64,000 nt of DNA, taken from NCBI RefSeq assembly GCF_964213995.1, contig NW_027590155.1, positions 620,001 through 684,000 on the forward strand. Direction: 5' to 3'. The translations under genes and the position numbers were made by a program. The notes under the pieces were generated by a model. It was not told where the DNA came from, searched no databases, and was given only the letters and a program-made list of their open reading frames with translations. The stretch is from Mustelus asterias. Its lineage: Eukaryota. How positions within the stretch are numbered: the first letter of the stretch is position 1; each line of letters opens with the position of its first letter. Positions 865 to 57,589 of this stretch are shown here, one piece after another.

Positions 865-975
865 ATCGACTGAGGGTGAACTTTTTGTCTTTGACGGTGA
901 TGGGACTAAGAATTTTGTTTTTCAAGAGCATTGTCTTCAATGTCATGATGACGGCCAGGGTGTGGCTATTTTGAG
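865..975 (+). CDS. T-cell receptor alpha/delta-type constant region, transmembrane/cytoplasmic exon (delta slightly favoured)
   Basis: Acceptor ttattttggcag ends at 864. The phase-1 exon reads (D)RLRVNFLSLTVMGLRILFFKSIVFNVMMTARVWLF*, with the R-x4-K charged TM pair and FN..MT motif of TCR alpha/delta chains. TGA at 972-974 is followed one base later by donor GTAAG, as in TRAC/TRDC exon 3. Confidence 0.9.
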
Positions 976-1552
976 GTAAGGTCGGTCACCTGAATGCGTG
1001 CCAAGAAAGACAAACTGTGATGAACAATGACCATTGACGGGATCTCGCGAGGCCACTGTTAAGGCAGACGCTGAAACTAACCCGTGGAGTGAGCATTAAC
1101 TTGGATGCATTTAGACAAACGAACTCTTACTCCAGTGCCCCATCCTCATCGCTTTTCATCCCTCCCTTGCCACCGCACCACCGCCCCCCCCGCCCCCGCC
1201 CCCGCCGCCCCCCCCCCCCCCCCCCCCCCGCCCCCGCCCGCCAACCCCCGCTCCCAATCGCAGCCTTGACTTCTTAAACCTCTCCAGATTATTGTTTAAT
1301 TATGGGTGTCACTGACTAGCCTAACTTTTTCCGCCCATCCCTTGGTCTTGAGCTGCGTGGCTCTTTCGGAGAGTCGGTGCAGACTCTATGGGCCAAATCG
1401 CATCCTTCTGCACTGTCGGGGTTCTTGTGCAATTGCAGTGGCTTCTGAGAATATTATTGGAGAATGTTAATGGAGACCCTAAAGATACAAGGTGTTCTTT
1501 GCTTGCTGACTCTTTGATGTGCTACTACTGTTGCTCCTTCCATTCCAAACAG

Positions 1553-2100
1553 AACTGCATTGGACGATGAAATGGATTCAGGTGTGAACTCATTGACTGG
1601 GGTATCAAAATCCAGAGGCTTCCTGATCAGAAGTTCCGCTTCAAGCACTTCAATCTCGCTTGTTTTAAATGGCGACTTAATTTTAAAAGATCCTCATTTC
1701 GGTAACTTTTTTCCACTGTTATTTTGATTTGAAATTCGTGGTTCTGCGTGAATTCTACTGCTTATGCTACATAAACATTTCAATTATGCATTTCAGCAAC
1801 AGCGTGGAGCTAGCATTGACATGGTGTCTGCCTGCATTAGTGTCGGAGACATTTTTGAAAACAGCATTTTCAATTTTAGGACGTATAGAACTTCGATTTT
1901 TATATTCTTTGCTTAGAATAGTAGAATCCTATTCCGGAGAAAGCAGCCACTCAGCCCATAGTGACAATGGCAGCCCTTTACAGGGCAATCTAGGTAATGG
2001 CACCTCACATGTTCCTTTTGGTTGTTTTACTCTGGTAGTTATTTTAAACATTGTACTTTAATGCATGCAATTTAAGAGCGTAAGATACATTAAATCAGCA
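1553..2100 (+). other. Putative untranslated last exon (3' UTR) of the TCR C gene
   Basis: Pyrimidine-rich acceptor ctccttccattccaaacag ends at 1552. Candidate poly(A) signals are ATTAAA 2089-2094 or AATAAA 2630-2635. TRAC/TRDC have a non-coding exon after the TM exon. Confidence 0.4.
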
Positions 2101-2825
2101 AGGATCTGATTGGATTTTCATCAAACTTTTAGACTGTTGCCAAGGTGATATTCTTTCTCCTGTACTTAATCTTGGACTCCAGATTTTCCTCCCAGTGCCA
2201 CGGAGGCACCAATCCCCAGCCTGTACATCTGGGCCCTTAGAGATAATCGAGCCACCACTTGCCACCGTGCAGAGCTTTATCATGACACGGCATTTCACAA
2301 GTAAGATGAACAAGAGTTTTTGAACATCTCGCCATGAGCTTAGCCTAAAATCAGGTTATTGCTCTCAGGTTATTTTACAGATGGGACATTCGTACACATT
2401 TAAGATCATCCGGTTAGTCAGGGGAAGCGAGAGTTATGGGGCTAAGGTGGTAAAGTGGAGTTGAGGATAATATCAAACCAACCATGATTTTATTGAAAGG
2501 CGAAGCAGCTCCTGTGGGCCGAATGGTCTACTTCTACTCCTCCGTCTTATGCTCTTCTGGTTCGTTAATCACACCTTTGTGCATATCTGTCACCTTGTTA
2601 TTTTTTCATATGCATCGCTTATAATATTGAATAAATTTGCAGTCTTTAATGAAGGGTGTCTTCTGCTTCTTTGTTAACGTGATGGCAAGACATGCATTTG
2701 GTTTGGTTGACAGAGAGCTCTTGTAGTCGCGCAGCACAAATGGAGGCCACTGAGCCCATCATGAGGATACCAGCTCCCCATGGCAGATCCCGCCAATTGG
2801 AGCCAATTTATTTTTTAAAGTTCCT

Positions 2826-5800
2826 CATAGCAGGAAGGGCTTGGCTCTTAGTGAGCAATTAATGGAGGGGTCACCTGTGGTTGTCCCCCTCCAAAACAAG
2901 TATATTGCTTTGGATAGTGTGGAGGAGGATGACTCTCCAGGGGTAAGCCACAGTGACCAGGTCACTGGCACAGAATCAGGTTCTGTGGCCCGGAAAGGAA
3001 AGAGAGGAATTCGGAGAGCAATAGTGGTGGGGGATGCGTCGGTTCGAGGCATGGACAGGCGATTCTGTGGGTGCGAACGGGACTCCAGGATGGTAGTCTG
3101 CCTACCTGGTGTTGGGGTACTGGATGTCTCCGAGCGGATAGGAGGCATATTAAAAGGGGAAGATAAAGAAACGGATGTCGTTGTACACATTGGTGCAAAT
3201 GACGTAGATAGGAAGAGCAGGGGGATCGTACGAGAGCAATTCAGGGAGTTGGGAAGTAGGCGAAAAGGTAGGGCCTCCAGGGTGGCAATAGCTGGGCTGC
3301 TCCCAATGTCTCGTGCCAGTGAGGCTAGGAATAGGGAGTTAATACAATTGAACGCTTGGCTAAAGGACTGGTCCAGGAGGGAGGGCTTCATTTTCCTGGA
3401 TCATTGGGAAGTTTTCAAGAGAGGATGGCACCTGTACAAGAAGGATGGGTCACAACTAAATTGGAAGGGCACGAATATCCTGGCTGGGAGTTTTGCTCGT
3501 GCAGTTCGGGTGGTTTTAAACAAATATGGCAGGGGGGTGGGGATCAAAAAATTAGGTCTCCAAGTGTCGAGGCTGGGGACGAGCTTGGGGCCAGGACAAG
3601 GCTGGCAAAGAAGAAGAGCACTCTGGGGGAGGATGAACTCACTGGGCCTGGAGGTCTGGAGTGCATCTACTTCAAAGCAAGGAGCGTAGCAGGTAAGACA
3701 GACGAACTTAGGGCCTTAATGCTTACGAAGAATTTGGATGTAGTTGCGGTGACAGAGACTTGGTTGAAAGAGAGACAGGACTGGCAGCTGAATATTCCGG
3801 GGTACAAGTGTTTTAGGCGAGACAGAGGAGGGGCCAAAAGAGGTGGGGGAGTAGCAGTATTAGTTAGAGAACATATTACAGCGGTGCAGAGGGAGGACAA
3901 TTCAGAGGGGTCGTGTAACGAGTCACTGTGGGTGGAGCTCAGAAACAGGAAGGGCGCAGTCACTATGTTGGGGATATACTACAGGCCCCCCAACAGCCCA
4001 AGGGAAGTGGAAGAACGGATATGTCAGGAGATACTGGATAGGTGCAGGAAAAAATAGGGTTGTTGCAGTGGGAGACTTCAATTTCCCTGGTATAGAATGG
4101 AAATCGCTTAGAGCTGGGACTCTGAATGGGGAGGAATTTGTAAAATGCGTACAGGAAGGTTCTTTGGAACAATATGTAGATAGCCCGACTAGAGAGGGGG
4201 CTATACTGGACCTAGTACTGGGGAATGAGCCCGGTCAGGTCTTCAAAGTTTCAGTAGGGCAACATGTGGCAAATAGTGACCACAATTCTGTTAGCTTTAG
4301 GATAGCGATGGAAAAGGATGAGTGGTGTCCCAAGGGTAAGGTGTTGAATTGGGGGAAGGCTAACTTTAGTGGGATTAGGCAGAAATTGGCAGTTGTTGAT
4401 TGGGAGAGGCTGTTTGAGGGTAAATCCTGCAGAAGGCAGAGAGTGGCTGTGGAGGGGTCTTTCTCTGCATGGAGGTCAGTGACCAGTGGAGTGCCCCAGG
4501 GATCTGTTCTGGGACCCTTGCTGTTTGTCATTTTCATAAATGACCTGGATGAGGAAGTGAAGGGATGGGTTGGTAAGTTTGCTGACGACACCAAGGTAGG
4601 TGGTGTTGTGGATAGTTTGGAGGGATGTCAGAAGTTGCAGCGAGACATAGATAGAATGCAGGACTGGGCGGAGAAGTGGCAGATGGACTTCAACCCGGAT
4701 AAGTGTGTGGTGATCCATTTTGGCAGATCCAATGGGATGGAGCAGCAGTATAAAATGAAGGGTACCATTCTTAGCAGTGTAGAGGATCAGAGGGACCTTG
4801 GGGTCCGGGTCCATAGGACTCTTAAATCGGCCTCGCAGGTGGAGGATGCGGTCAAGAAGGCGTATGGCGTACTAGCCTTCATTAATCGAGGGATTGAGTT
4901 TAGGAGTCGGGAGATAATGCTGCAGCTTTATAGGACCCTGGTTAGACCCCACTTGGAGTACTGCGCGCAGTTCTGGTCACCTCATTACAGGAAAGATGTT
5001 GAAGCCATTGAAAGGGTGCAGAGGAGATTTACAAGGATGTTGCCTGGATTGGGGGGCATGCCTTATGAGGATAGGTTGAGGGAGCTTGGTCTCTTCTCCC
5101 TGGAGAGACGAAGGATGAGAGGTGACCTGATAGAGGTTTACAAGATGTTGAGGGGTCTGGATAGGGTGGACTCTCAGAGGCTATTTCCAAGGGCTGAAAT
5201 GGTTGCTACGAGAGGACACAGGTTTAAGGTGCTGGGGGGTAGGTACAGGGGGGATGTCAGGGGTAAGTTTTTCACTCAGAGGGTGGTGGGTGAGTGGAAT
5301 CGGCTGACGTCGGTGGTGGTGGAGGCAAACTCGTTGGGGTCTTTTAAGAGACTTCTGGATGAGTACATGGGATTTAATGGGATTGAGGGCTATAGATAGG
5401 CCTAGAGGTGGGGATGTGATCGGCGCAACTTGTGGGCCGAAGGGCCTGTTTGTGCTGTGGCTTTCTATGTTCTATGTTCTAAATCCACAACTGGCATGTG
5501 GGAGTCTTTTAAGGAACAGTTGTTAGGGCTGCAGGACAGGCATGTGCCTGTAAAAAAGAAGGATAGGAAGGGTAGGATTCGAGAACCGTGGATAAACAGG
5601 GAAATTGAGGGACTGGTCAAAAAGAAAAGGGAGGCGTACGTTAGGTCCAGGCAGTTAAAAACGGAGGGAGCTCTGGAGGAATACAAAGAAAGTCGGAAAG
5701 AACTCAAAAGAGGAATTAGAAGGGCAAAAAGGGGTCACGAAATGTTCTTGGCAGACAGGATTAAGGAGAATCCCAAGGCATTTTATTCATACGTTAGGAA

Positions 5801-7588: not shown

Positions 7589-7589
7589 A

Positions 7590-13836: not shown

Positions 13837-14194
13837 TGCCCATTGCACAGCGGGAACAGGCGGATGCCACGATTCTCTCTGTCTTTCCTCTGGATGACCA
13901 GAGGTGCAGAAAATAATACAACTCAAACATTAGGCTGCAAACGGCAAGAACCATAAGTACAACTGCAGAGTCCAAAAGCAGAAAGAAAGGCACATTCTGG
14001 GCTGTTTCGACGGTTTCAGGACATGGAAATTGATCTGTTCTTCTGTGTGCTGTAGATTTGAACCTAACGGCTCAGCGCTGAAAGAGTTAATCGAAAAGTG
14101 AGCATGCGATGAGCAGGAGCTACTGTAAGTGCTTCAGTGCAAGGGAGCCCCATCAGTAAGACCAGAACCTTGCAGTCATGGAGTATAGTGAGGA

Positions 14195-14950
14195 ATCTCT
14201 CTCACTCTCTCTCTCAAGCACACATACTCTCACACACGCACATACACACACTCAAACAAACACGCACACAGAAAAACGCACACTCAGACATGCACACACA
14301 CTCAGGTAAACGCGCACACATACTCAGACAATCAGAAACAAACACACATACAAACACGCACCCAAACGCTCAGACAAATACACGCACACAAACACACACC
14401 CATAGGCATACACACACACTCAGACAAAAATGCAAACTCTCTTAGACAAAAGCTGACACACACACAATCACAGACGTAGACAAAGACACACAGATTACCT
14501 CAGGCAAAATGACACACACACATATATACACGCACACACACAGATACATACATGCACACAAGCACATGCATAGATACTCACACTGTCAGATAAACACACA
14601 CACAGGCGCACACACACACACACATTGACAAGCAAACATAAACACACACTCTCAGACAACACAAAGATACACACACTCAAACAAGCACATAGAAACACAC
14701 ACACTCTCATAGAGCAGACACAAATGCTCAGACAAACTCAGACACACATACACACACGCTGCCTTTCAGCTAAATACACACACTCAGACACACACAAACA
14801 GAATCTCAGAAATCATACACACGGATACACCCACACAGAGCCCCAGACAGACACACACATGCAGTATCAAAAGAACATGCAGAGAAAGATATACACTGTT
14901 GCTCAGGGAAAACAAAAAAACATACACAGACCCACACACACAGAAACAGA
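14195..14950. repeat. Degenerate (CA)n-rich low-complexity tract
   Basis: Long AC-rich sequence; its ORFs are T/H-rich artefacts. Confidence 0.9.
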
Positions 14951-15294
14951 AAAAATAGAAACCGGAAAAGGCCTTTCGGCCTTTCGAGCCTTCTTCGCCA
15001 CTCATTATGATCATGGATGATCGTCAAATTGAATATCCTGATCGTGCCTTCCCTCCAAATCCCTTGCTCCCTTTTGCCCCAAGAGCTATATCTAATTTCT
15101 TCTTGAAATCCTGCAACGTGTTGGTCATAATCACTTCCTGTGGTAGTGAATTCCACAGATTCACCACTGTCTGGGTGATGAAGTTTCTCTTCACCTCAGT
15201 TCTAAAGGTTTTACCCCTTATCCTCAGACTATGACCCCCTAGTTCTGGACTCCCCAGCCTTCTGGGATAATCTTTCTGAATTTACCCTGTCTAA

Positions 15295-17775
15295 TAAGAA
15301 CATAAGAACATAAGAAATAGGAGCAGGAGTAGGCCATCTAGCCCCTCGAGCCTGCCCCGCCATTCAATAAGATCATGGCTGATCTGACGTGGATCAGTAC
15401 CACTTACCCGCCTGATCCCCATAACCCTTAATTCCCTTACCGCTCAGGAATCCATCCATCCACGCTTTAAATATATTCAGCGAGGTAGCCTCCACCACCT
15501 CAGTGGGCAGAGAATTCCAGAGATTCACCACCCTCTGGGAGAAGAAGTTCCTCCTCAACTCTGTCTTAAACCGACCCCCCTTTATTTTGAGGCTGTGTCC
15601 TCTAGTTTTAACTTCCTTACTAAGTGGAAAGAATCTCTCTGCCTCCACCCTATCCAGCCCCCGCATTATCTTATAAGTCTCCATAAGATCCCCCCTCATC
15701 CTTCTAAACTCCAACGAGTACAAACCCAATCTCCTCAGCCTCTCCTCATAATCCAAACCCCTCATCTCCGGTATCAACCTGGTGAACCTTCTCTGCACTC
15801 CCTCCAATGCCAATATATCCTTCCTCATATAAGGGGACCAATACTGCACACAGTATTCCAGCTGCGGCCTCACCAATGCCCTGTACAGGTGCATCAAGAC
15901 ATCCCTGCTTTTATATTCTATCCCCCTCGCGATATAGGCCAACATCCCATTTGCCTTCTTGATCACCTGTTGTACCTGCAGACTGGGCTTTTGCGTCTCA
16001 TGCACAAGGACCCCCAGGTCCCTTTGCACGGTAGCATGTTTTAATTTGTTTCCATTGAGATAGTAATCCCATTTGTTATTATTTCCTCCAAAGTGTATAA
16101 CCTCGCATTTCTCAACGTTATACTCCATTTGCCATATCCTCGCCCACTCACTCAGCCTGTCCAAATCTCTCTGCAGATCTTCTCCGTCCTCCACACGATT
16201 CACTTTTCCACTTATCTTTGTGTCGTCTGCAAACTTCGTTACCCTACACTCCGTCCCCTCCTCCAGATCATCTATATAAATGGTAAATAGTTGCGGCCCG
16301 AGTACCGATCCCTGCGGCACGCCACTAGTTACCTTCCTCCAACCGGAAAAACACCCATTTATTCCGACTCTTTGCTTCCTGTCGGATAGCCAGTCCCCAA
16401 TCCACTTTAACACACTACCCCCAACTCCGTGTGCCCTAATCTTCTTCAGCAGCCTTTTATGGGGCACCTTATCAAACGCCTTTTGGAAATCCAAAAACAC
16501 CGCATCCACTGGTTCTCCTCCATCAACCGCCCTAGTCACATCTTCATAAAAATCCAACATGTTCGTCAAGCACGACTTTCCCCTCATGAATCCATGCTGT
16601 GTCTGATTGATCGAACCATTTCTATCCAGATGCCCTGCTATCTCCTCTTTAATAATGGATTCCAGCATTTTCCTTACTACAGACGTTAAGCTGACCGGCC
16701 TATAGTTACCCGCCTTTTGTCTCCTTCCTTTTTTAAACAGCGGCGTAACATTAGCCGTTTTCCAATCAACCGGCACTACCCCAGAATGCAACAAGTTTTG
16801 ATAAATAATCACTAACGCATCCACTATTACCTCTGACATTTCTTTCAATACCCTGGGATGCATTCCATCCGGACCCGGGGACTTGTCCACCTTCAGTCCC
16901 ATTAGTCTACCCAGCACTGCCTCTCTGGTAACATTAATTGTATTAAGTATTTCTCCTGCTGCCAACCCTCTATCGTTAATATTTGGCAAACTATTTGTGT
17001 CCTCCACCGTGAAGACCGACACAAAAAACTTATTTAAAGACTCAGCCATATCCTCATTTCCCACTATTAACTCCCCCCTCTCGTCCTCCAAGGGTCCAAC
17101 ATTCACTCTAGCCACTCTATTCCTTTTTATATATTTATAAAAACTTTTACTATCATTTTTTATATTAATTGCTAGCCGAGCTTCATAGTCTATCCTTCCT
17201 TTCTTTATCGCTTTCTTCGTCTCTCTTTTTTGTTCCTTAAATTTTTCCCAATCACTTGTTTCTCCACTATTTTTGGCCACTCTGTACGCAGCTGTTTTTA
17301 TTTTAATACTCTCCTTTATTTCCTTCGTTATCCACGGCTGGTTCTCCCTTTTCTTACAATCCTTGTTTTTTGCTGGAATATATTTTTGCTGAGAACTGAA
17401 AAGGATCTCCTTAAAAACCCTCCACTGTTCCTCAGCTATCCTACCTGCCAGCCTGCTCTCCCAGTCTACCTTAGCCAATTCATCCCTCATCCTATCATAT
17501 TTCCCTCTGTTCAAACAGAGGACACTGGTTTGGGACCAAACTTTCTCCTCTTCCATCTGAATCAGAAATTCGACCATATTGTGGTCACTAGACCCAAGAG
17601 GGTCCTTCACAATAAGATCCTTAATTCTACCTACCTCGTTACACAATACCAGATCCAAAATAGCTCGTTCCCTCGTCGGTTCCGTAACATGCTGTTCAAG
17701 GAAACTATCCCGACAGCATTCTAAGAACTCTTCCTCCATTCCACCCTTACCGACTTGAGTCTGCCAGTCAATGTA
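15295..17775 (-). mobile_element. Young 5'-truncated CR1 LINE with uninterrupted 781-aa ORF2 segment
   Basis: ORF 15394-17739 has full RT motifs and no stops; (TAAGAACA)n tail at ~15295-15315; it lies inside an older CR1. Confidence 0.95.
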
Positions 17776-19120
17776 CTTTTAGAATTTTATCAGTCTCTAT
17801 GAGATTCCCTCTCACTCTTCTAAACTCCAAATAATATAATCCTAACTGACTTCATCTCTCCTCACTCGACAGACCAGGAATCAGTCTGGTAAATCTTCAC
17901 TGCCCTCGCTCTGCAGTAAGGACATCCTTCCTCAGATAAGGACACCAACACTGCACACAATACTCCAGTTGTGGGCTCACCAACGCCCTGTAAAATTGCA
18001 GTAAAATATCCCTATCCTTATACTCAAATCCTGTCGTTATGAAGGCCAACATACCACTTGCCTTCTTTACCGCCTGCTGAACCTGTGGTGCTTTCTTTCA
18101 GCGCCAATACACATGGATGCCAAGCTGTCGCTGAATATTCACCGCTCAATTTATTCAAATAATAATCTGCCGTCCTATTGTTGCCTCCGAAGTGGATGAT
18201 CTCGCATTTGCCCACATTATACTGCATCTTCGATGCATATGTCCATTCACTCTGCCCGTTTAAATCAGGCTGAAGCATCGCTGCATCCTTCTCAGAGCTC
18301 ACCCTCTCACCTAACTTTGCGTCACCTGCAAATTGGAGAAAACACATTTAGTTCCCTCTTTGAAATCAATTATACACAATAAGAACAGTTGGGCTCCTAG
18401 CGTGGATCCCTGCGGTACCCCACTGGTCACTACCAGCCAATTGGAAAAACACTCATTTCTGCCAACTCTTTGCTTCCTATCTGCTAAGCAGCTTTCTATC
18501 CAGCTCAATACACTATCCATGCCACTTTTATGGTCGTACGCTATATGAGACCTTGCCGAAAGCATTTTAAAGTCTAAATAACCCATACCCACCAGTTTTC
18601 CTTGGTCACCTCTACTAGTTACATTCTCACACAATTCCAATAGATTTGCCAAGCATGATTTCCCCTTTGCAAATCCATGTTGACATTTTACCACTGCCTT
18701 CCAAATGCTGAGTTATGAAATCCTTAATAATTGATTCGAGCAATTTCCTAGTTCTAATGTTCGGCTCTTTGCCTTATGGTTCACCCTATTTCTCTCTACC
18801 TCCCTTTTTGAATGGCGGGCGTATATTAGCTACCCTCCAATCTGTGGCGACCAGTTTAGAGTCTAAATATTTTTTCGAAAATGCCCACAAATGGATCAAC
18901 TATTTGTTATGTTTCCCGCCTTCTTACTTTCACACTCTATTTTTTCCCTTCCGAATCAATTCCTGGGTCCTTTTGTGCTGAATTGAAACTGCTCCAAATT
19001 CTCAGGTCGATGGATTTATTTACCAATTTGTATGTTTCTTCTTCCCTTGTACGCGATGGCTTGGCCACAGTTCCCTTACCAGTCTTCCACATCCGCTGTG
19101 CTAATATCTTTCTTCAATAT
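17776..19120 (-). mobile_element. Older degenerate CR1 (its 3' part continues at ~14950-15295)
   Basis: Fragmented RT ORFs with QHGFAKGKSCL and SGVPQGSTLG. Confidence 0.85.
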
Positions 19121-19124
19121 CACA

Positions 19125-19589: not shown

Positions 19590-21090
19590 CACACACACAC
19601 ACAATGCGAGACCAACACACGCACACACACACACATTCAGAAAAACACACTGAGACAAGCAGACACAAGCAAACTCGCAAACGTACACACACAAACAGAC
19701 AAATGGACGGCACCGTAGCGTAGTGGTTAGCACTGCTGCTTCACAGCTCCAGGGACCTGGGTTCGATTCCCAGCTTGGGTCACTGTCTGTGTGGAGTTTG
19801 CACATTCTCCTTGTATCTGCGTGGGTTTCCTCCGGGTGCTCCGGTTTCCTCCCACAGTCCAAAGATATGCGGGTTAGGTTAATTGGCCATGCTAAAAATT
19901 GCCCCTTAGTATCCTGAGATGCGTAGATTAGAGGGATTAGCGGGTAAAATATGTAGGGATGTGGGGGTAGGGCCTGGGTGGGATTGTGTTCGGTGCAGAC
20001 TCGATGGGCCGAATGGCCTCTTTCTGTACTGAAGGGTTTCTATGATTTCTAGGAAACAGTCACGAGCACACACACACAGAAACACACACACAGGATCTCA
20101 CAAAAATCGATACAGGCAAACTCGCACACACAGGCCCATACACAGATATACTCGCTCAGACAAACACACGCACGCACCCACAGGCACACACATACTTTCT
20201 CTCTCTTTCAGACACACAGACACGCTGTCAGACAAATACATGCACACACACACACAGACACAAACACACACACGCATTTAGAAAAGTACAGAAAACATAC
20301 ACGCAAACACACAGGCAAATGCAGGCACACTTATTTCTGAGACGAACAGACACAGGAAAACTCGCAAACACAGAGAAACGCTCAGAAAAACACAGGCACA
20401 CACACACTCACAGACAAAGATACAATCACAAGAACACACTCAGACAAACACACACAAGCAAACTCTTGCACACAGCCATATACAGAGAAAAATTCAGACA
20501 AAGAAAACATACATTCTCAGACATGCATGCACACACACAGACACACTCGCTGGCAAATATACACACACAGACCCACACACAGCTGTACTATCAAACGAAC
20601 ACACAGGCACACACATACAAATTCACTCTGACGCAAACACACAGATACACACAATCTCTCAGACAAAACACACACACTTAGAGACAAACACATAAGCACT
20701 CAGTCAAACACTCAGGCATACATACAATCACAGAAAAACACGTAGGCACCAACACACACACACAAACACCCAGGCAAACACAGTCACGCACACAGAAACA
20801 CACGCACACAGTCCAACATCGGCACACATATGATCTCAGTCAAGCAACATAGGCAAGGTTGTAAACTCACAGACACGCACTTTCAGCATAATACACACAC
20901 ATACACACACATGAACAGACAATCAAACAGACACAAGCACACGCACACACACACACACGGACTCAGGCAAAAACAGTCACACAATCTCAGAGAAATAGAC
21001 ACAAGCAAAGTCGCACATACGGACACATACTAATAAATACTCAGACAAAAGCAAACATACACACACTCTCAGATAAACACAGAGACAAAC
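19590..21090. repeat. Degenerate (CA)n-rich tract containing an HE1-like SINE (~19705-20050, +)
   Basis: AC-rich sequence; the embedded SINE is nearly identical to the 13505 copy. Confidence 0.85.
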
Positions 21091-21618
21091 CAAAAAAAAT
21101 CAGGATGGCGTCGGACCATAGCGACTTATTGCATGCTGTGCCCCGCATCTCTCTGATGTTATCTTTTACTCTCGGTCTTTGCTTCTAAAACTCTATTCTA
21201 ATTCTTTTGAAATCTATAACAATGTTTTAATTAAATTGATCTTTCTCTACACCCTAGCTATGACTGTAACATTACATTCTGCAATCTCTCATTTCCTTCT
21301 CTATGTGCGTGTAATGCCGTGTTTGTGAAACCTACCTTTCCACTCACGTAATGAAGGAGCAGCGCTCCGAAAGCTCGTGATTCCAAATAAACCTTAACCT
21401 GGCGTTTTGAGCCTTCTTACTGTTCTCTATGTGCGGTATGCTTTGTTTGTATAGCGCGCAAGAAACAATACTTTTCACTGTATACTAATACACATGACAA
21501 TAATAAATCAAATACAACAAAATCAAAAACATATACTCTCAGAAGAACACACAGAGACACACACACACAGACATACACACTATTCCGGACAGTCTCACAA
21601 ACACAGAGACAGAGATCA

Positions 21619-21688
21619 TAAAGTGTTGAGGTCAATTTCAGTTTACTCAACCTGCTGGGTAACGGAAGCAAACTTAAAACCGGTGTGT
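21619..21688 (+). pseudogene. Possible decayed TCR J segment
   Basis: Reads EVNFSLLNLLGNGSKLKT(G) with a phase-1 donor G|GT at 21682/3, 57 nt after a heptamer-like TAAAGTG. It has L instead of F in FGxG and no nonamer. Confidence 0.3.
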
Positions 21689-22499
21689 GGGTTTAATTGT
21701 GTAATGAGCTAATGTATAAATGTATCACCATAGCCCAGGGTGGGGTTGTAGTTGATCATTTATCTGCTGTCTGTACCCCTGAACAAATGTCAAATTGGAG
21801 AGGTTATCAAGTTTGTATTATAATGTAATGATGTGAAACATGTGGGAGAAGAATTGGTGTGATAAAGGGTGGAAAACAAACTGGGGGATGAGACTGAAGC
21901 TGCTGTGCAGACTGAATAGTTCTTGTTGTGTGAATGGAGGGACACATGTAGGGACGGATGGAGGGAGGAAGGGATGGACGGATGGATGGACCGATGGACC
22001 GATCGAGGGAGGGAGCAATGGATGGAGGGATGGATGGGGGTGAATCTGAGAAGCTGAAGATTAAATTTAAGAGGTTCCCAGTGTCACTGAACAACTGACC
22101 TGGGGGTAGCCATTGGGCAGAGACTATGCTTGCTGCTCTTTCCCCTCCTGGCGCCAGGGGTCACTGGGACACTCCCTGCAGCTGCTGCTGCTGCTCCTCA
22201 CAATGTCACATCTTGGCCGTACCCTGGACCAGCTGCAGCTCTTTGGCGGAACATCAGGAGCCAGTGGCGGGGAAGGACTGGCCGTCCTATTTCAGTGACG
22301 TCACCACCAGCCCCGACACCCGCCGTTTATTTTAAGAAAAAGAACGACTGTTCAGGAATGGAGAAAGTGACTGAAATTCTGAACCAGACAGGCCACCGGG
22401 AGGTGATTTATATGTAAATAAAAATACAATTATTAATTTAATATGAAAGATGCCGAAGGCGAAACTGCACATGCGCCGTATGTTCTCTGCGGGAAGATG

Positions 22500-22925: not shown

Positions 22926-23545
22926 AGGACAGTGGCTGAATGACAGACTCTCCAAGGTTCAAATCCGAAAAAAAGAAATAAGACGGTAGTGGGTTTAAAT
23001 TTGTGATTCAAACCATGCTTGCGAACAGAGAGAAAATGTGCGACATGTTTTGTCCACAATTCCCAGTCTGGTGAGGTGACTGCGAGTAAATGGAAGAACA
23101 CTGAACTGGGATATAATTAATGTCCTTATCGGGGCAAGGTGTCCTTTGGTGTTATTCACATCAGAAGAAAATCCTGATCTAGTTATGGTAAGGCAGAGAT
23201 TCTGGTCCGTAAAAGGTGTCAGGAAACAACAAAGCTCGAAAATTACGCTCGAAATGACAGTGGCATTGTGGGGAAATTCAGTAATATTCGCAAAAAAGCA
23301 TTCACACACACGCTGTGTACCGACTGTGATCAAATGGACCGAGAAACGGAAAGGGGAGATGGGAAAGGGCTGACCAATAATTGATACAGACTAGGAAATA
23401 ACACCAAAGACAAAATGTCAGCTGACGCACCACTAACTCACTTTGTTGAGTGCCTTCGCTCGGAATTATAATACATTTCTGTTACTCTCACGTTTTTCGG
23501 GTGAGCGCGCCCTCTGCTGATCACTAACTGGAACTATCAGTGCGG

Positions 23546-23823
23546 TGCTTTTGTCCGGGATCCGCTCTATCTCTGCACCAGAAACACAATCGGAGAGAAG
23601 CGTCCTGGTGACATTTGAGGAACAGTGTTCCTTTGTACAAAGTAGGCAATATTTTTCCACATCCTCCGAGCTATAAATCCTCATTAAATATCTCGGAGTT
23701 TCGCTGGGATACAGGAACAGAGTAGGGAGAGTCGCTGTCCAGTATTTACAATCCAGCATTATGCTCTGTGCTTGGAGAACCCTTAATTCAGATTGATCAT
23801 TGGACACAGAATCATCACTATTT
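23546..23823 (-). pseudogene. TCR Valpha/delta pseudogene
   Basis: Acceptor tgttgcag; SDDSVSNDQSELRVLQAQSIMLDCKY...LFLYPSETPRYLM aligns with the V at 31950-32260. The WY and YYC motifs and the heptamer are lost; a nonamer-like ACAAAAGCA remains at 23546-23554. Confidence 0.75.
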
Positions 23824-30507: not shown

Positions 30508-30546
30508 CACAGTGATGAGAACGAGTGAAATCCTCGTACAAAAACT
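30508..30546 (+). other. 23-RSS of the intact TCR V
   Basis: CACAGTG (30508-30514), 23-nt spacer, ACAAAAACT (30538-30546). Confidence 0.95.
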
Positions 30547-31912: not shown

Positions 31913-32389
31913 GGTTTTTGTACGGATTAACTGTGACTCTGTAACTGCGGTTCAGCGCACACTGTTACAGATACACGGCAGAGTCAGAGACACGGACCCC
32001 GGTGATATTTAATGGAGCTGTTTTCTTGTCTCTGTCCAAATTAGCAGAAAACTGGTCCGAAAAATCAGGAGACTTATCCCCCTTCCCCTGGCCGTAACTT
32101 TTCAATAAATATCTCGGAGCTTCTCCGGGATACAGGATGTACCAGAATAGAGTTTGGTCAACGTACTTAGCTTTATAACTGCAGTTCAAAATTACCGTCT
32201 GTACTTCCTGAACCGTTAATTCAGGCGGCTCCTGGGAAACTGAAGTTTGGCCATTGGTTCCTGTAACAACATATAGACTGTGTGAGAAATCTGTGAGTGA
32301 ATATAACCCATTGAACACACACTGAGGATTTGAGCTCAGACTCACGGGGCAGCATGTCCATTATCATCAGTAGAACACGCAGGGAACAT
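31913..32389 (-). pseudogene. TCR Valpha/delta pseudogene (leader 32389-32346, V exon 32260-31950, defective RSS)
   Basis: QTSVSQEPPELTVQEVQTVILNCSY...LFWYILYPGEAPRYLL...SDSAVYL*QCAL has an in-frame TAA before the second Cys. The leader exon is 44 nt (frameshifted). RSS is CGCAGTT-21-ACAAAAACC. Confidence 0.9.
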
Positions 32390-33314: not shown

Positions 33315-33663
33315 AGTTTTTGTACGAAGCCCGCGGGATCCTCATTCAGTGTGGGTCTCAGTGCACAGTAATACACGGCGTTATCTGTCATCTTCAAATC
33401 TTTCATGGACAAGTGAAAAGTGCTTTGTGTCTCGCTGAGATTCCAGCTGAAATGTTTAAAGCCGGGAGCCGTATCGGTAAATCCATAACTCTCGGCTCTG
33501 AGCAGATACTGAGGAGCTCGGTGTGGATACTGGCGATACCAGAACAGGACATAGACTGTAGGTAAACCCTATACAGAGTAACTGCAGGGTATTGCTGAAT
33601 CTTCACCCTCTGCTGCTTCAACTCCTGGTTCTGACTGGGACACTGAGTCACCGTTACTCATGT
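33315..33663 (-). pseudogene. TCR Valpha/delta pseudogene with intact 23-RSS
   Basis: DSVSQSEPGVEAAEGEDSAIPCSYSV*GLPTVYVLFWYRQYPHRAPQYLL...TDNAVYYCALRP has a single TAG (33569-33571). RSS is CACACTG-23-ACAAAAACT (33353-33315). A degenerate leader candidate lies at ~34065-34118. Confidence 0.9.
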
Positions 33664-33809: not shown

Positions 33810-34029
33810 GAAGTTTAACAACACCAGGTTAAAGTCCAACAGGTTTATTTGGTAGCAAAAGCCACACAAGCTTTCGGAGCTCCAAGCCCCTTCTTCAGGT
33901 GAGTGAAGGGGCTTGGAGCTCCGACAGCTTGTGTGGCTTGTGCTACCAAATAAACCTGTTGGACTTTAAGCTGGTGTTGTTAAACTTCTTATTGTGTTTA
34001 CCCCAGTCCAACGCCGGCATCTCCACATC
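33810..34029. mobile_element. Penelope-type palindromic insert with hammerhead motif, in the presumed V intron
   Basis: Long inverted repeat centred at ~33903; flanking direct repeat ATCAGGACAATAA (33797-33809 / 34030-34042); minus strand CAC-CTGAAGA-A-GGGGC-TTGGA-GCTCC-GAAA-GC-TT-GTG. Confidence 0.75.
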
Positions 34030-46129: not shown

Positions 46130-46780
46130 CCTCAGTGTTCGTCTGTCTCTGCAATGTTCCAGTGTCAGCAATCAATTCACCGGGAATAATCCTTGGTGTT
46201 TTTGATATATTATGTTTCATTTGATTTCATTTCATTTGATTTATTATTATCGCACATATTAGTACACAGTGAAGATTATTGTTTCTTGCGCATTGTACAG
46301 TCAGAACATAACGTACATAGGGAAGGAAGGGAAAGAGTGAATAATGTAGTGTTCCAGTCATAGCTAGGGTGTAGAGAAAGATCAACTTGATGCGAGGTAG
46401 GTCCATTCAAAAGTCTGATTGCAGCAGGAAAGAAGTTGTTTTCCAGACGGTTTGTACGTGTCCTCAGATTTTTGGGTTTTGTTCCCGATGGGAAAAAGGT
46501 GAGAGAGTATGTCCGGGGTGCGTGGCGTTTTGTTTTCATAGGATTTTAGACATGTTTACGAGTGTCGAATCGGAGGTTGTGTTGACTCAGCCAGAGGCAG
46601 AAGCCGGGCGTCCCTGAGGCTCTTTGAGACTGACCTGTAAAGCCAAAGCGTTCAATAGTGGCAGCAACTGGCTGGTCTCGGTGCGACAGGTTCCTGAACA
46701 GTGTTTATAGTGTCTTACTCAGTACGATAGTCTTGGTCAACCTACAATTACTCAGTACGATAGTCTTGGTCAACCTACAA
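46130..46780 (+). pseudogene. IGHV: Truncated IgM-type VH pseudogene (V part ~46562-46740)
   Basis: [47 protein letters not shown]. The intron remnant 46130-46205 and upstream 45810-46030 are homologous to the 56.2-kb VH region. A Rex-type 3' end is inserted in the intron (~46215-46520, -). No leader or RSS is seen. Confidence 0.85.
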
Positions 46781-49620: not shown

Positions 49621-49856
49621 GTTTACCTCGACTCGATGCACTGGCCAGGCTAAATTTTCCCTCAATGTACCCGAACAGGCGCTGGAGTGTGGCGCCTGGG
49701 GGATTTTCACAGCAACTTCATTGATGTGTGAATGTAAGCCTACTTATAACACGAATAAACAAACTTACAAATTAAAATCTTCCAGCAGATAAGGATAATG
49801 TCATAAATGTTCAGAAAGAAAATAATTATTTTCAACAATGACGATCCAATGACGAT

Positions 49857-52153
49857 ACAGGACAGGCATGTGCCTGTAAAAAAGAAGGATAGGAAGGGTA
49901 GGATTCGAGAACCGTGGATAACCAGGGAAATTGAGGGACTGGTCAAAAAGAAAAGAGATGCGCATGTTAGGTCCAGGCAGCTAAAAACGGAGGGAGCTCT
50001 GGAGGAGTACAAAGAAAGTAGGAAAGAACTCAAACGGGGAATTAGCAGAGCAAAAAGGGGTCACGAAATGTTCTTGGCAGACAGGATTAAGGAGAATCCC
50101 AAGGCATTTTATTCATACATTAGGAACAAAAGGGTTGTCAGGGAAAAGATCGGACCTCTCAGGGACAAAAGTGGGGAATTATGCTTGGAGCCCAAAGAAG
50201 TAGGGGAGATCCTAAATGAATACTTTGCGTCGCTATTCACAAAGGAGAGGGATGTGTTGACTGGGAGTGTCTCGGAGGGGAGTGTTGAACCGTTGGAGAA
50301 AATCTCCATTCCAAAGGAGGAAGTGTTAGGTTTGTTAGAGAATATAAAGACTGACAAATCCCCAGGGCCTGATGGAACCTATCCAAGCCTGCTCAGGGAG
50401 ACGAGAGATGAAATCGCTGGGCCTCTGACGCAAATCTTTGTCTCGTCACTGGATGCAGGTGGGGTCCCAGAGGATTGGAGGATAGCTAATGTGGTCCCGT
50501 TATTTAAGAAGGGTAGGAAGGATAACCCGGGTAATTATAGGTCGGTGAGCTTGACGTCCGTGGTGGGGAAGTTGTCGGAGAAGATTCTTAGAGATAGGAT
50601 GTATGCGCATTTAGAAAGGAATAAACTCATTAACGATAGTCAGCATGGTTTTGTGAGAGGGAGGTCATGCCTCACTAACCTGGTGGAGATTTTTGAAGAA
50701 GTGACCAGAATGGTTGACGAGGGAAGGGCCGTGGATGTCGTCTATATGGACTTTAGTAAAGCGTTTGACAAAATCCCTCATGGTAGGCTGGTGAAAAAGC
50801 TTGGATCTCATGGGATAAAGGGGGAGGTGGCTAGATGGGTGGAGAACTGGCTTGGTCACAGAAGTCATGATGTGGAGATGCCGGCGTTGGACTGGGGTAA
50901 ACACAGTAAGAAGTTTAACAACACCAGTTTAAAGTCCAACAGGTTTATTTGGTAGCAAAAGCCACACAAGCGTTCGGAGCTGCAAGCCCCTTCTTCAGGT
51001 GTGAAGAAGGGGCTTGCAGCTCCGAAAGCTTGTGTGGCTTTTGCTACCAAATAAACCTGTTGGACTTTAACCTGGTGTTGTTAAACTTCTTACTTGGTCA
51101 CAGAAGACAGAGGGTGGTAGTGGAAGGGTCTTTTTCCGGCTGGAGGCCTGTGACTAGTGGTGTTCCACAGGGCTCTGTATTGGGACCTCTGCTGTTTGTG
51201 ATTTATATAAATGATCTGGAAGAAGGTGTAACTGGGGTGATCAGTAAGTTTGCGGACGACACAAAATTGGCAGGACTTGCAGATAGTGAGGAGCATTGTC
51301 AGAGGCTACAGAAGGATATAGATAGGCTGGAAATTTGGGCAAAGTAATGGCAGATGGAGTTCAATCCTGATGAATGCGAAGTGATGCATTTTGGTAGAAA
51401 TAATGTAGGGAGGAGCTATACGATAAATGGCAGAACCATAAAGGGTGTAGATACGCAGAGGGACCTGGGTGTGCAAGTCCACAGATCCTTGAAGGTGACG
51501 TCACAGGTGGAGAAGGTGGTGAAGAAGGCATGTGGCATGCTTGCCTTTATAGGACGGGGCATAGAGTATAAAAGTTGGGGTCTGATGTTGCAGATGCATA
51601 GAACGTTGGTTCGGCCGCATTTGGAATACTGCGTCCAGTTCTGGTCGCCACACTACCAGAAGGACGTGGAGGCTTTGGAGAGAGTACAGAGGAGGTTTAC
51701 CAGGATGTTGCCTGGTATGGAGGGGCTTAGTTATGAGGAGAGATTGGGTAAACTGGGGTTGTTCTCCCTGGAAAGACGGAGGATGAGGGGAGACTTAATA
51801 GAGGTGTATAAAATTATGAACGGCATAGATAGGGTGAACGGTGGGAAGCTTTTCCCCAGGTCGGTGGTGACGTTCATGAGGGGTCATAGGTTCAAGGTGA
51901 AGGGGGGGAGGTTTAACAGAGATATCAGAAGGACATATTTTACACAGAGGGTGGTGGGGGCCTGGAATGCGCTGCCAGGCAACGTGGTGGAGGCGGACAC
52001 ACTGGGAACGTTTGAGACTTATCGAGACAGCCATATGAACGGAGTGGGAATGGAGGGATACAAAAGAATGGTCTAGTTTGGACCAGGGAGCGGCGCGGGC
52101 TTGGAGGGCCGAAGGGCCTGTTCCTGTGCTGTATTGTTCTTTGTTCTTTGTTG
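49857..52153 (+). mobile_element. CR1 LINE (same subfamily as 2826-7588) interrupted by a Penelope-type insert
   Basis: RT ORFs 49807-50955 and 50949-52076; (TTCTTTG)n tail. Confidence 0.95.
50865..51092. mobile_element. Penelope-type palindromic insert with hammerhead motif
   Basis: 14-bp target-site duplication CTTGGTCACAGAAG (50851-50864 / 51093-51106); inverted repeat centred at ~51000; same family as 33810-34029. Confidence 0.85.
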
Positions 52154-55100
52154 TTCATTCACAATTTAATAATTCATTCAGCAGTTCTCAAACATTCATA
52201 ATGATTAGCATATTAAAATTACTTTCCGGAAGGCAGGCGATGTTGTCATGGCCATCATTTTTTCTCCTTTGCTCTTTGCATTCAGTAAACTAGTGGTTAG
52301 CCACCTTCTTGACCCGCTGCACAACCTGCAGTGTAGGCACACCCACAGTGCTGTTAGGGAGGGTGCTCCTGAATTCCGACGCAGCGACAGTAAATGAACG
52401 GCAATATATGGCCAAGTCAAGTTTATGAGTGTGTTGGAGTGGAATTTCCAGGCGGGTTTGTTCCAATTCCCCAATTATCATCAATTCATAGAGATAAACA
52501 GTTATTTCATCAAATATATTCAGCATTTGGATAAAAGCAAATTCTGGAAACTGAAACAAAAATAATAAATGCTGGAAAATCTCAACGGGTCTGATAGCAT
52601 CTGTGGAGAGAGAATAGAGCCAACGTTTTGAGTCAGGATGACCATTTTTTATTTGGAGAAAATTGAAGAGGGTGATGAAATTGAGAAATGTTGAGGGTGG
52701 ATAGGGCGAAGGAAGTTTTTTTAGGATATAGTTAATGATTGAGGCGTTGATTAGGTTAGCTAGGATGGAGAAGTTGATTATGATATTTAGAATCGGTATT
52801 TGAATTGATACAACTTGTGTGTGACTCTAAATAGTGTATATAATTAAACAGTATCGATTTGAACTATTCCCATTTCACAGGAAAGTTATGCAGCTTCTCT
52901 GACACATTATTAGAAACAATGATGATCTCTCCAACGCATCAGGAATACTCTGCCGAAGCGTCATCCAGACTCGAAACGTTGGCTCTATTCTGTCTCCACA
53001 GTGGTTGTCAGAATTGCTGAGATTTTCCAGCATTTTGTTTGTTTTCAGTATTTCATTCTATTCAACATATAATTGTACTTTGCTTCGTATGATTTATTGA
53101 TATGAACATTTATTGACATTGTATTGGCCTTTTTGTTAGCAAGGAATATAATCTGTCCCAGAATTCAGTGGGAAATGGAATTGATTCAGACCGACGATAA
53201 TGAGCAGCTCTCTCGCAGCCTCTGTGCTTTATTAACAATTAATCACCTCATCATCACACAGAAACATATCTGGAGTGTGCGATGATTTTCAAAGAGTTGA
53301 GATAAATGAAACTATCTGTACCTCATGTGAAGTTACTGAAGCTTTAAATCCCGATTCTTTATGACTCTGTTTTGGGAAATGAGGTCACACTTGTAGTTGT
53401 CCAGTGAGTTTCACAATATCTCTGTTGCCAGATTATTTACTTTTCAGCCTGTTACCTTCACTAATTTGGGTGAGGGCATGTTGAGTGATTTGTTGCACAG
53501 ATAGAACCACACGTTTGAAATACTACAATCCTTGCTCCTCAACCTAATCACGTTCCCTCTTTCTATCTTGGGTATGAAGATTCAGCATCAGCAGAGAAAT
53601 GACCCATCCGAGCCGCAGGAAAATGTCCTTCTCTTCGTGAGGATCAGCTTGCTAACTCCCGAGCAAATCGGAACGTATTTCACCCAGAAACTCTGGAAGA
53701 ATTGGAGGTATTAGCCTGACACAAATGGAATAAAGGAGCTTCTTCAATTTATGAAGCAGCCAAGCACAAATATGGGAATGTAGAACAGCATCTTTCAGTA
53801 CCATCTACCAATGCATCCATCAATCCATTCACTGATTCCTCAATCAAAATATTCAGCCATCAAACTGTCATTCATCCAACTATCATTCATTCAACTATCA
53901 TTCATTCCTGCATCAACACAGTCATGCATTTATTGTTTGCATAGATGGTGACGTAATATTACTTTATTTAGGCCAGTGATCCAGAGGCCCAGGACAATGA
54001 TGTGAGGACACGGATTTAAATCGGACCATTGCCCCTGGTGGAATTTGAATTCAATTAATAAATCTGGAATAGATACTATTGGGACCATAGGAACCTCTCT
54101 AATTCCCCAATGAAAGAAATCTGCCATGGCTACCTGGACTCACAAGGATGTGACTCCCGATGGACAACAAAATGGCTGACTCTTTAATATCTTCAGAAGT
54201 GGCCTAGAAAACCAGGCAGTTCAAGGGAATTTGGGACAGGCAAAAAGTGCTGGTCTTTCCACCAACTCAAGCATCCCATGGAAAGGTAAAGGGAACGAGA
54301 ACACAAACATACATGTTAATGTATTACAACATGTGTCCTCACTCTGACTCATCTCTCAGAGTCTGCCTGTAATTCTTTCTATCCATCCATCACAATATCA
54401 TGATGTGTTGGAAAAATCATCATTGCTTCGAACAGGGTGCCGGAGAACCTGCATAACTTTCCTTTCATGAGAGATGGGAAAAACTCATCCAGATTTACAA
54501 CTTTAAAAAATTAAAGTGCCTCCAGTACTGTTGCTCGGTAGATGTGTTTACAAATGGGCCCCATTGACAATGTGAAGGGTTTTAAGTTGGCTTGCAGCCA
54601 AGCAGTCACTACTGAGGAAAGAGATCTTTGATTTACTGCACAAACAAAGCCAGATGCTTCCTGTCAATAACTTTGAGCATTTGGCAGAAGGCTGGATTGC
54701 TGCGAAATACTGTGTGGGACAGATTCGCGTGAACCTGAATGGACAAGATGGGATTCAGACATTTAAACAATAAATGTTTCATTCGCAAAAGAAAGACACA
54801 TTTTAAATCGTAATCATTCAAATCAAATATTTTCATTCAGTGTCCTGTTCATTATGTGAGTAAATAGTATCGCAAAACAATAAAGTGACCAGATGCTTTT
54901 TCATTTGTATAACTTCCAAGTAAATGCCATTCCAATAATTAAAGTCTGTTTATTAACCACTTCATAAAATGCGACAGAGAGACGTTGATGGTCCCAATTC
55001 CCCAGTCAATTGAGATCAGAGCAATGGCCAAAAATGCATCGAAATAATATTAAAAGCACATCATAAAACTGACATGAACAGCGGGGATTCCTGGAATATT

Positions 55101-56190
55101 CTGAAAATTCTGTATCGCATTTAAACAGCAGCGTCTCTTGTACGTGATTAATACCCTATTCTATTGTACAGTATAATCTGATTTCCATTATTGAAGGGTT
55201 CCTCTCATAGCTGCCAATGAGTGGAGAAATGATCAGGTCATAACCTGATTCAATGGAAGATAAAACATTTATTCTTGTAATTTTGTGTAATGTGCCGCAA
55301 AGTCCTGATATCCTGTGTTCCCAACACCAGTGAATGTTCGACAGCTGGTGGCCAATAGAGTGAGCTGCAATGATTTGGATGCTGAAGGAGAACTTTAATG
55401 ATCTCCGTGTCCGTTCCATTAATTAACTTCTCTGTCAAAATTCGATTTAAGTTTATGTCTCTCTGTCAACTCACTATTCGATTATCCGGAGGGCGGGATT
55501 CTTATTATTTTCAAAGGGCTGTCTTCGAGATTGTGCAGTTTGACAAATAGAAGGAGAAAAACTGTATTGTGTGAGAGTTTCTTCTCATCTCCAATCCCAA
55601 ATTATCCAGTGATAGCCATCCACACTGTAAATAGAATCACTTTGTTCATCCCCCACGTTTAGTAACAGAAATCGATAACAATTATTCTGATAAATTATGC
55701 TTTATTATTATAATGTGACAGAGACCAGGGATTGTTGCAAAATAGACTGATTGTCTCTTTATTTTCCGAAAATGTTATTTCATCATTTTCAGATGTATGT
55801 TCTTGTTAGGGGCGTGGTAATAAAAGCACCATACTTACAATGGAATTCGTTTTTTCTTTTAAATAAAGGATGATGAACTGCAATATCACCATCAGAAATA
55901 ATGGAGACAATATAATGAACATATTCAGCCAAACAAATATCCCGACACAAATAAAATGCCAATTTTAATATTAACCTACTGTAAATCTCGGAGTCCATTC
56001 TGTTGGGGTGTGGAAGGTGGGACGAATCCAGTCGCCGCCTCCAGCAGGGAATCAACAGGCGGCGCCTCGAAAGCCGCACCCTGCTGCCGGGTATTTAAAT
56101 GCCGCTCAGTGGGACCGGAATCCAACAGTCTAGGAGCTGGTTTGTTCACTGAGTTCCTGACACAACCATTTCCCCCAATTTACCAGAAGG

Positions 56191-56661
56191 ATGAGGTCGG
56201 CGATTTCTCTCAGTTTGTTGCTGACTTTCTTATCCGGTGAGTAGTTTTTATTGTCCAAGTCTCTAACTGTTAGTGTTCGTCTATCTCTGGAATATTCCAG
56301 AGTCAGCAATCACTTCACCAGAATTAATCCTCGGCGTTTTTAATCTATTTTTACAGGTGTCTAGATGCAGGTCGTGTTGACTCAGTCAGAGGCAGAGACC
56401 GGACGTCCGGGAGGCTCCCTGAAACTGACCTGTAAAACCAGCGGCTTCAGCCTTGGTAGCGCTTACATACGGTGGATCCGACAGGTTCCCGGACAGGGTC
56501 TGGAGTGGCTGCTTCAGTACGACGGTTCATCCAGCAACTACTACGCGCCTGGAATTCAAAATCGATGTACTCCGTCGAAAGACACTTCTAACAGCATCTT
56601 CGCTTTGGAAATTACTAACCTGAAGGCTGAAGACACCGCCATCTATTACTGTTCAAGACAC
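56191..56661 (+). pseudogene. IGHV: IgM-type VH segment (leader 56191-56236, V exon 56357-56661) with a nonsense codon in the leader
   Basis: [69 protein letters not shown]...[10 protein letters not shown] has a shark IgM VH-type framework. TAG is at 56362-56364; TATA-like TATTTAAAT at ~56092. Confidence 0.92.
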
Positions 56662-56700
56662 CACAGCGAGAGGAACCAGGGCTGCACCCGAACAAGAACA
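56662..56700 (+). other. 23-RSS of the VH
   Basis: CACAGCG (56662-56668), 23-nt spacer, ACAAGAACA (56692-56700). Confidence 0.9.
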
Positions 56701-57025
56701 GCTCCGGAGGGAATGCAACAGCTTCCAGCGTAACCTGAAGGTCAGTACTTGTTTTAAATGTGATATTAATAGCAGAGTTCATAACCGGCCCACAAACCTA
56801 AGAGAACGAAACTGCAACACAAAACCTAACAAGCATACCCATGTAATTGGATGTGGTATTTTCTCTGTATATACTTTTAAAAGTTTCAGCAACGACAGAC
56901 CTGAATATAACGCTCGTTTTAATGTATCTGACACTTTGGATAAGGTTGTGTTCATTGTATTTTGAAAAAGTACTGCATATATTCTAAACTGGTTCGGAAG
57001 TAAATGTGTTCTGGAGAGTGAGTGC

Positions 57026-57053
57026 AGTTTTTGTGCGGGTATGTGTTACTGTG
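57026..57053 (+). other. 12-RSS facing the VH
   Basis: AGTTTTTGT (57026-57034), 12-nt spacer GCGGGTATGTGT, TACTGTG (57047-57053). Confidence 0.92.
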
Positions 57054-57109
57054 ATACATCAGTGGTACTGGGTACTGGGGACAAGGTACCATGGTGACGG
57101 TGACTGCAG
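57054..57109 (+). CDS. IGHJ: Pre-joined IgH D(-D)-J block
   Basis: a-TAC ATC AGT GGT ACT GGG TAC TGG GGA CAA GGT ACC ATG GTG ACG GTG ACT GCA G|GTAAG = YISGTGYWGQGTMVTVTA, with a WGxG JH motif and phase-1 donor. There is no RSS between the D-like and J parts. Confidence 0.88.
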
Positions 57110-57589
57110 GTAAGAACCATGTAATTATTTAGTAACTGTTTTACTTGAGTTTTTGTTTTATATTTTTTTATGGATTTTACTAATTTGTTCAATGCAATGA
57201 GGTTTGCTGGATTCTGTGCTGAAAATCTTCACAATGTTTCATGTGATTCTGCTTAAAATGGGGTTATGAAATTCTACTGTTAATTGACAAAAGGTGATGC
57301 TGAGTGATTCAGTCCCTGGTAGTTGTATTTTGGTGTTGATCTGCCAAGACATTATGTGGCTGGGTTACTTTGAATGCCCAACTTCTGGTTACCAGTCCGG
57401 CGTTTCTGCAATGCTTAAACTCGGGGACATCTAGTGGCTGCGGGTTGTACCATCCAATGCACACGCATTTGAAATTTAACCCAATACTAACAAAATGGGT
57501 TAAACTTTCTGTATTAATTTAGTGATCATGTTCCGCTTAGTCAAAATGCTGGTGTTGTTATGACATATTTCTGTTCATTTTAATTATTG

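Follow-up and report, generated by a model that had tools for sequence, protein, structure and literature searches.

The 64,000-nucleotide stretch of Mustelus asterias DNA analysed here (RefSeq assembly GCF_964213995.1, contig NW_027590155.1, positions 620,001 to 684,000 of the forward strand; hereafter the window, in whose coordinates all positions are given) most probably extends from the 3' end of a T cell receptor (TCR) delta constant gene as far as the 5' part of a decaying immunoglobulin M (IgM)-type V-DDJ minicluster, a reading to which we assign a probability of about 0.8. It would be a stretch of the shark antigen-receptor complex in which the end of a delta constant (C) region, C-delta, is followed by a field of variable (V) segments and then by the start of an IgM-type minicluster. 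Four TCR alpha/delta-type V segments lie between the C-delta exon and the IgM-type unit, three of them inverted relative to C-delta; the co-oriented and intact one, V30, would either be used by a diversity-joining-constant (D-J-C) unit located farther downstream or undergo joining by inversion. In the IgM-type unit there are a leader, a heavy-chain V segment (VH; here VH56) with a recombination signal sequence of 23-nt spacer (23-RSS), a spacer of 392 bp, a 12-RSS, a D-(D)-J and a splice donor, the D-(D)-J being a germline fusion that we ascribe to earlier RAG activity. We take the unit to be a pseudogene because of a nonsense codon in the second part of the leader. A second VH, 10 kb upstream of VH56, is a truncated relic, insertions of long interspersed nuclear elements (LINEs) fill much of the rest, and C-mu exons would presumably follow beyond the window.

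At 865–975 on the plus strand lies the exon that closes the coding part of a TCR delta constant gene; it encodes the end of the connecting peptide, the transmembrane (TM) segment, a short tail and the stop. It is flanked by an AG acceptor at 863–864 and a GT donor at 976–977, with the TGA stop at 972–974. The TM segment carries an Arg and a Lys four residues apart (GLRILFFK), the CD3-binding pattern common to TCR alpha and TCR delta. Searched against the PDB, the exon translation matched the TM regions of TCR alpha and TCR delta with E values of about 2e-6. These results bear out the TCR alpha/delta TM exon proposed in a preliminary description of this DNA. When the exon was used as a query against 1.84 billion representative sequences, 67 proteins were retrieved at E values up to 0.001. 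The translation of 867–971 is 100% identical to the C-terminus of the M. asterias protein P0018, and all 35 residues are the same in the M. asterias gene models P0018 and P0085; two more M. asterias models, located on other contigs, fall into one cluster with P0018. The next best match, at 31 of 35, is the catshark VH-J-C model P0019, and the alpha-type constant regions of M. asterias (P0055 and P0070, named alpha-like by NCBI) reach 23/35 and 21/35. In P0085, a NAR-TCR V and a supporting V are combined with a KLIFGNGT-type J and with a C region ending in an exon identical to 865–975; NAR-TCR is a TCR delta chain, according to Flajnik et al. 2025 (PMC12227049). In a tree built from the last 125 amino acids of 20 proteins, the P0018 group falls inside a 10-row clade with the proteins of Leucoraja and Hypanus that NCBI names 'T cell receptor delta constant' (support 97/99), and the elasmobranch alpha-type rows lie outside it. 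The phylogeny, which had been put forward earlier as a check that might move the exon out of the TCR alpha/delta class, therefore leaves it there. Because of the full identity to P0018 and P0085, the placement in the delta clade and the 21–23 of 35 residues shared with alpha-type constant regions, we conclude from sequence comparison that the exon is delta-type.

The other end of the arrangement is an IgM-type V-(DD)J unit about 55 kb from the TM exon, on the same strand and with TCR-type V segments in between, as originally supposed. By tblastn, two VH segments are found, at 46573–46728 and 56357–56661, both on the plus strand; together with a single J they account for the two IgM-type VH and one JH described earlier. 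Both VH are dead. The leader exon of VH56 (56191–56236, plus strand) encodes MRSAISLSLLLTFLS plus 1 nt and is followed by GTGAGT; its first 11 residues are those of the leader of Heterodontus HV01 (P0002). The IgM-type V exon (56357–56661, plus strand) scores 56.4 bits against the Pfam V-set model and is 68–71% identical to its five best-scoring matches out of 17 proteins, all five being shark VH-type V regions and HV01, an Ig heavy chain V region, being among them. A 23-RSS follows directly (56662–56700, plus strand), with the heptamer CACAGCG (6/7), a 23-nt spacer and a nonamer matching at 7/9 positions. The unit thus shows the split leader, the IgM-type VH exon and the 23-RSS of a shark IgM minicluster, as well as, a few hundred bp past the V, an Ig heavy chain (IgH)-type J (WGxG) followed by a splice donor. 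The open reading frame of a functional minicluster member is missing: an in-frame TAG at 56362–56364 interrupts the second part of the leader. The frame after the leader intron reads G-V-stop-M-Q-V-V-L-T-Q, the TAG standing in place of the Q of the V-Q-S that is found in all six fetched shark VH, and an alternative acceptor nearby is out of frame. Further on, VH56 reads RCTPSKD where the same six sequences all have RFTASK, and the changes are non-conservative. The second VH (46573–46728, plus strand) is a truncated IgM-type pseudogene that extends from framework region (FR) 1 to FR2 only. It is 60% identical to VH56 over 52 amino acids, contains two in-frame stops and has no RSS; the likeness stops past FR2 and gives way to a short duplicated stretch. 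A search for the Ig promoter octamer gave no exact match (4.3 expected) and 93 matches with one mismatch (88 expected), with nothing meaningful upstream of VH56.

The J of the unit is a germline-joined D-J. A 12-RSS at 57026–57053 on the plus strand (nonamer 57026–57034, 8/9; 12-nt spacer; heptamer 57047–57053, 6/7) lies 392 bp from the end of VH56 and leads directly into a D-(D)-JH coding segment at 57054–57109 (plus strand), 56 nt that are open in the J frame, end in WGQGTMVTVTA and are followed by a GT donor at 57110. This is the single J-like element of the window: the strict scan gave one match, and only one of 26 [FW]GxG motifs in the relaxed scan had both an RSS and a donor. By the 12/23 rule, the 23-RSS of VH56 calls for a 12-RSS on the 5' side of D1, and the 12-RSS at 57026–57053 would be that signal.

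Positions 54500–60400 were compared with contigs from three samples of coded organism A, four public runs in all. Two of these runs, X1 and X2, belong to one sample and have contigs that span 56660–57073, and a contig of run X4, from another sample, spans 56867–57096; the joint is carried by contigs of samples S1 and S3. The depth of the contigs over 56660–57096 is about 42–65, like that of the single-copy flanks, and the shared leader and J core reach 600–1100. This 12- to 20-fold depth over the leader region and the J core indicates that both are common to many IgM clusters. Some contigs match from 57073 onward only and carry a heptamer plus 11 different nt just before that position; these loose ends are the unjoined JH of other clusters. 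In the window, the 19 nt at 57054–57072 occupy the place where the unjoined copies have 11 nt next to their heptamer. Since these 19 nt are absent from those copies, they are not J sequence, and we read them as D-derived and fused in the germline. The joint is probably D-D-J, with two D segments contributing. Run X4 has two inserted nucleotides, AT, following 57072, right where D and J meet.

A V-DDJ state could also be a somatic partial rearrangement, a 2R intermediate of the kind formed in shark lymphocytes, that was caught in the assembly; in the nurse shark, thymocytes and B cells frequently contain V-DDJ intermediates (PMC2435157). We consider this extremely improbable. At full depth, roughly one position in every 300 is different between the runs and the window, and the runs therefore represent other individuals or haplotypes; at least two further samples have contigs that carry exactly this joint at the full depth of a single copy and depart from the window at other positions, and consequently the joint did not arise somatically in the animal that was assembled. 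An unjoined version of the VH56 locus is not among the run contigs listed over 54500–60400. The V-(DDJ) structure suggested in the preliminary description holds as a germline-joined D-J, the same joint being found in the contigs of other samples.

The intervening field contains the four TCR-type V segments of which at least that number had been anticipated. Using the window's own V translations, tblastn placed them at 23.5–23.8 kb (minus strand), 30.2–30.5 kb (plus strand), 31.95–32.26 kb (minus strand) and 33.35–33.66 kb (minus strand). Six open reading frame (ORF) translations were submitted to Pfam, where the V-set cut-off is 26 bits: four exceeded it (56, 49, 37.8 and 56.4 bits), and two, an alternative frame at 33.4–33.7 kb and the ORF holding the TM exon, gave no V-set match. 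Only one of the four TCR V segments, V30, is intact. Its leader exon (29451–29496, plus strand) encodes MRLPVFTLIWVTFIV plus 1 nt, is followed by GTAAGG and matches MRLTVLSLVWITFLV, the leader of the Chiloscyllium homologue P0110; an intron of 707 bp separates it from the V exon (30204–30507, plus strand; open frame, Pfam V-set 56 bits). The V exon ends directly at a 23-RSS (30508–30546, plus strand) with a heptamer of 7/7, a 23-nt spacer and a nonamer of 8/9. V30 shares 53% identity with the V of P0021 and 47% with that of P0024, both chains with a delta-type C, and a homologue search returned shark proteins of up to 76–81% identity, all of them unnamed; two of these homologues, P0107 and P0112, carry delta-type J or C sequence.

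The three inverted TCR V segments are pseudogenes. The one at 23480–23823 (minus strand) is the nearest to the TM exon, at a distance of about 22.5 kb; it resembles V32 (tblastn E value 5e-9) but has neither the conserved WY.Q nor the second Cys (YYC), and no RSS. V32 (31950–32260, minus strand; Pfam V-set 49 bits) has an in-frame TAA at 31967–31965, between Y and C, and its heptamer has lost the CAC, so that the nonamer at 31921–31913 alone survives. V33 (33354–33663, minus strand), which matches V30 with a tblastn E value of 4e-23, is interrupted in the first complementarity-determining region by a TAG at 33571–33569; it retains a 23-RSS (33315–33353, minus strand; heptamer 6/7, 23-nt spacer, nonamer 8/9). 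The region upstream of V33 contains a short repeat-like element with an internal inverted repeat (33830–33950), and a copy that translates like it sits in a LINE region at 50868–51080. PDB searches with V30 and VH56, meant to separate TCR V from Ig V, were uninformative, being dominated by multi-domain antibody constructs; VH56 came out as VH-like.

At the threshold used, the RSS scan gave five matches, four of which directly abut the coding ends of V30, V33, VH56 and the J; the fifth, at 32256–32282, was treated as a chance match. Good RSSs are therefore present on four of the seven V and J elements, with V32 keeping a nonamer, and the earlier statement that most elements carry one was roughly right. 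What it had missed is the pseudogene state of three of the four TCR V segments and of both VH.

This state bears on the further proposal that Ig-TCR chimeras could form in cis from the segments of the window, which we do not uphold. VH56 is closed by its TAG and altered in a conserved motif, the VH at 46573–46728 is truncated and has two stops, both lie 3' of the C-delta exon, and neither a free D nor a TCR J is found in the window. The search for free D segments with relaxed RSS thresholds gave no D-like pairs from 22 forward and 12 reverse matches, most of the additional matches falling in CA-rich tracts, and no TCR J was found in the window by either the strict or the relaxed J scan. The low-complexity CA-rich tracts, at 14100–15000 and 20000–21700, have long T/H-rich open frames and many false RSS-like matches. 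Since both VH are downstream of C-delta and in the same orientation, deletional joining to D or J segments upstream of the 865–975 C exon is impossible; being closed as well, they would yield no functional VH-C-delta chains with the C gene at 865–975. The general part of the proposal, that IgH clusters adjoin TCR alpha/delta and VH can thus be joined to TCR delta without an inter-chromosomal event, has already been published (PMC12227049), but the VH of this window cannot contribute.

It is conceivable that VH56 is instead a working TCR-delta-associated Ig-like V, of the TAILV or VH-delta type, that would rearrange to the TCR delta D and J of a neighbouring cassette, its TAG being an error or a private allele. 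An IgH-like V does lie within 55 kb of a C-delta exon, in the catshark model P0019 a VH is combined with a J and C of the delta type, and several delta-type C gene models are found on different M. asterias contigs. We nevertheless judge this improbable. The TAG at 56362–56364 is unchanged in the contig of run X1, which has a T>C difference at 56366, and is thus common to the other sample as well; two residues are replaced in the motif that all six fetched shark VH conserve; VH56 is followed, 392 bp downstream, by an Ig-type J (WGQGT) of its own with a splice donor, in the manner of an IgM cluster; and it lies 3' of the sole C-delta exon in view.

Several points weigh against the overall reading of a C-delta end followed by a decaying IgM-type minicluster. 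As a discriminator between alpha and delta, the comparison with human chains was dropped, because the scores of the exon tie (30.6 bits with the TCR alpha TM and 30.2 bits with the TCR delta TM, among 22 PDB sequences at E values up to 10), and the delta call was made on gene models that contain the same 35-codon exon, the other C exons lying outside the window. The four public runs are contigs and not reads, and their kind, organism and tissue are not on record. The 19 nt of the joint could stem from one D or from two, and the count of two is our inference. The 6.9 kb past the J, inspected by eye, show no open frame resembling C-mu; in 57.1–62.2 kb the largest plus-strand open frame is 72 amino acids long, and no Ig C-domain-like sequence was noticed in that interval. 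As no C-mu was seen there, the VH56 unit may be an orphan V-DJ instead of a cluster. The same region past the J contains a diverged tandem repeat (57468–61000; period about 620–710 bp, at least 3–4 copies, 72–81% identity), as well as a second repeat pair 1.33 kb apart; the tandem repeat may be a feature of a J-to-C intron.

Lastly, the contig comparison was confined to 54500–60400, with the contiguity of 34–54.5 kb outside its scope, and this touches on whether the juxtaposition of TCR and IgM elements could be an assembly artefact in which repeats, either LINEs or near-identical parts of IgM clusters, fused two contigs. Both kinds of repeat are at hand: nine of the ten large ORFs tested carry RVT_1, from which we conclude that LINE copies fill much of the window, and the leader and J core are multi-copy at the depths given above. 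Yet contigs of other samples tile 56419–57073 and 57218–59954 with few differences, TCR-type V segments and VH relics alternate in the window more than once, and the same type of linkage has been published for four other elasmobranchs (PMC12227049); we therefore regard an artefact as very unlikely. The window contains no N. On the minus strand, 15397–17778 is an uninterrupted ORF of 794 amino acids with a reverse-transcriptase domain of 114 bits and may be a young LINE copy. The ORF at 2754–3686 (plus strand), directly upstream of LINE endonuclease/reverse-transcriptase ORFs, gave weak GDSL-lipase/OSK-like matches below the Pfam cut-offs and may be an ORF1 of the esterase type. About 170 bp past the TM exon, at 1140–1240, there is a long C-rich tract that includes some 25 consecutive C.

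We preferred a TCR delta end followed by an IgM-type minicluster, and a wider organization can be sketched around it. At least four delta-type C gene models of M. asterias (P0018, P0086, P0085 and P0022) are located on four contigs of 1.0–1.8 Mb, and are either paralogues or haplotigs; two of them are NAR-TCR models, and P0022 is clearly different from the others. These four models, together with the finding that no J-alpha follows in the 63 kb past C-delta, suggest tentatively that TCR delta here consists of several C-delta cassettes interleaved with IgM miniclusters and not of one translocon gene, although we hold this to be rather doubtful. If true, such a multi-cassette TCR delta would blur the divide between translocon and minicluster and would offer many partners in cis for VH-to-delta joining.

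With the window, an arrangement already known gains a new example, and a triakid shark joins the species with IgH miniclusters among TCR alpha/delta genes. The window displays the boundary at base resolution: mostly decaying V segments, a germline D-J joined by RAG and LINE insertions. It opens no new question, as both the linkage and its bearing on the use of VH by TCR delta have been published. [quoted passage not shown] Mustelus is not mentioned in the part of PMC12227049 compared here, which leaves out the gene coordinates of table S1, and a literature search on Mustelus Ig and TCR loci turned up only reviews with single mentions.

IgH-like V segments, called TAILV or VH-delta, are also reported to occur inside TCR delta loci (Deiss et al. 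2019; Parra et al. 2010, as cited in PMC12227049). The VH-type V of the window resembles these in being close to C-delta, but VH56 differs from them in that it has its own IgH-type J and donor, is not open and lies 3' of C-delta. With regard to the inverted segments, human TRDV3 is an example of an inverted V downstream of TRDC. PMC12227049 describes such inverted V for tetrapods in general. The three inverted V of the window likewise lie 3' of C-delta; in contrast to the tetrapod case, all three are pseudogenes, the nearest about 22.5 kb from the TM exon.

The joined segment has its own precedents. V-DDJ is a named configuration in PMC2435157, and shark Ig genes joined in the germline by RAG were described by Lee et al. 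2000, as discussed in PMC2193153. The window follows the same pattern: in germline DNA, D is already joined to J, whereas the V is unjoined and the RSS of the 5' partner is kept, the 12-RSS directly 5' of the fused D-J being complementary to the 23-RSS of VH56. Retention of this RSS fits with RAG action in germ cells. Compared with the germline-joined shark Ig genes in these sources, the partly joined unit of the window differs in being dead and in adjoining a TCR delta gene.

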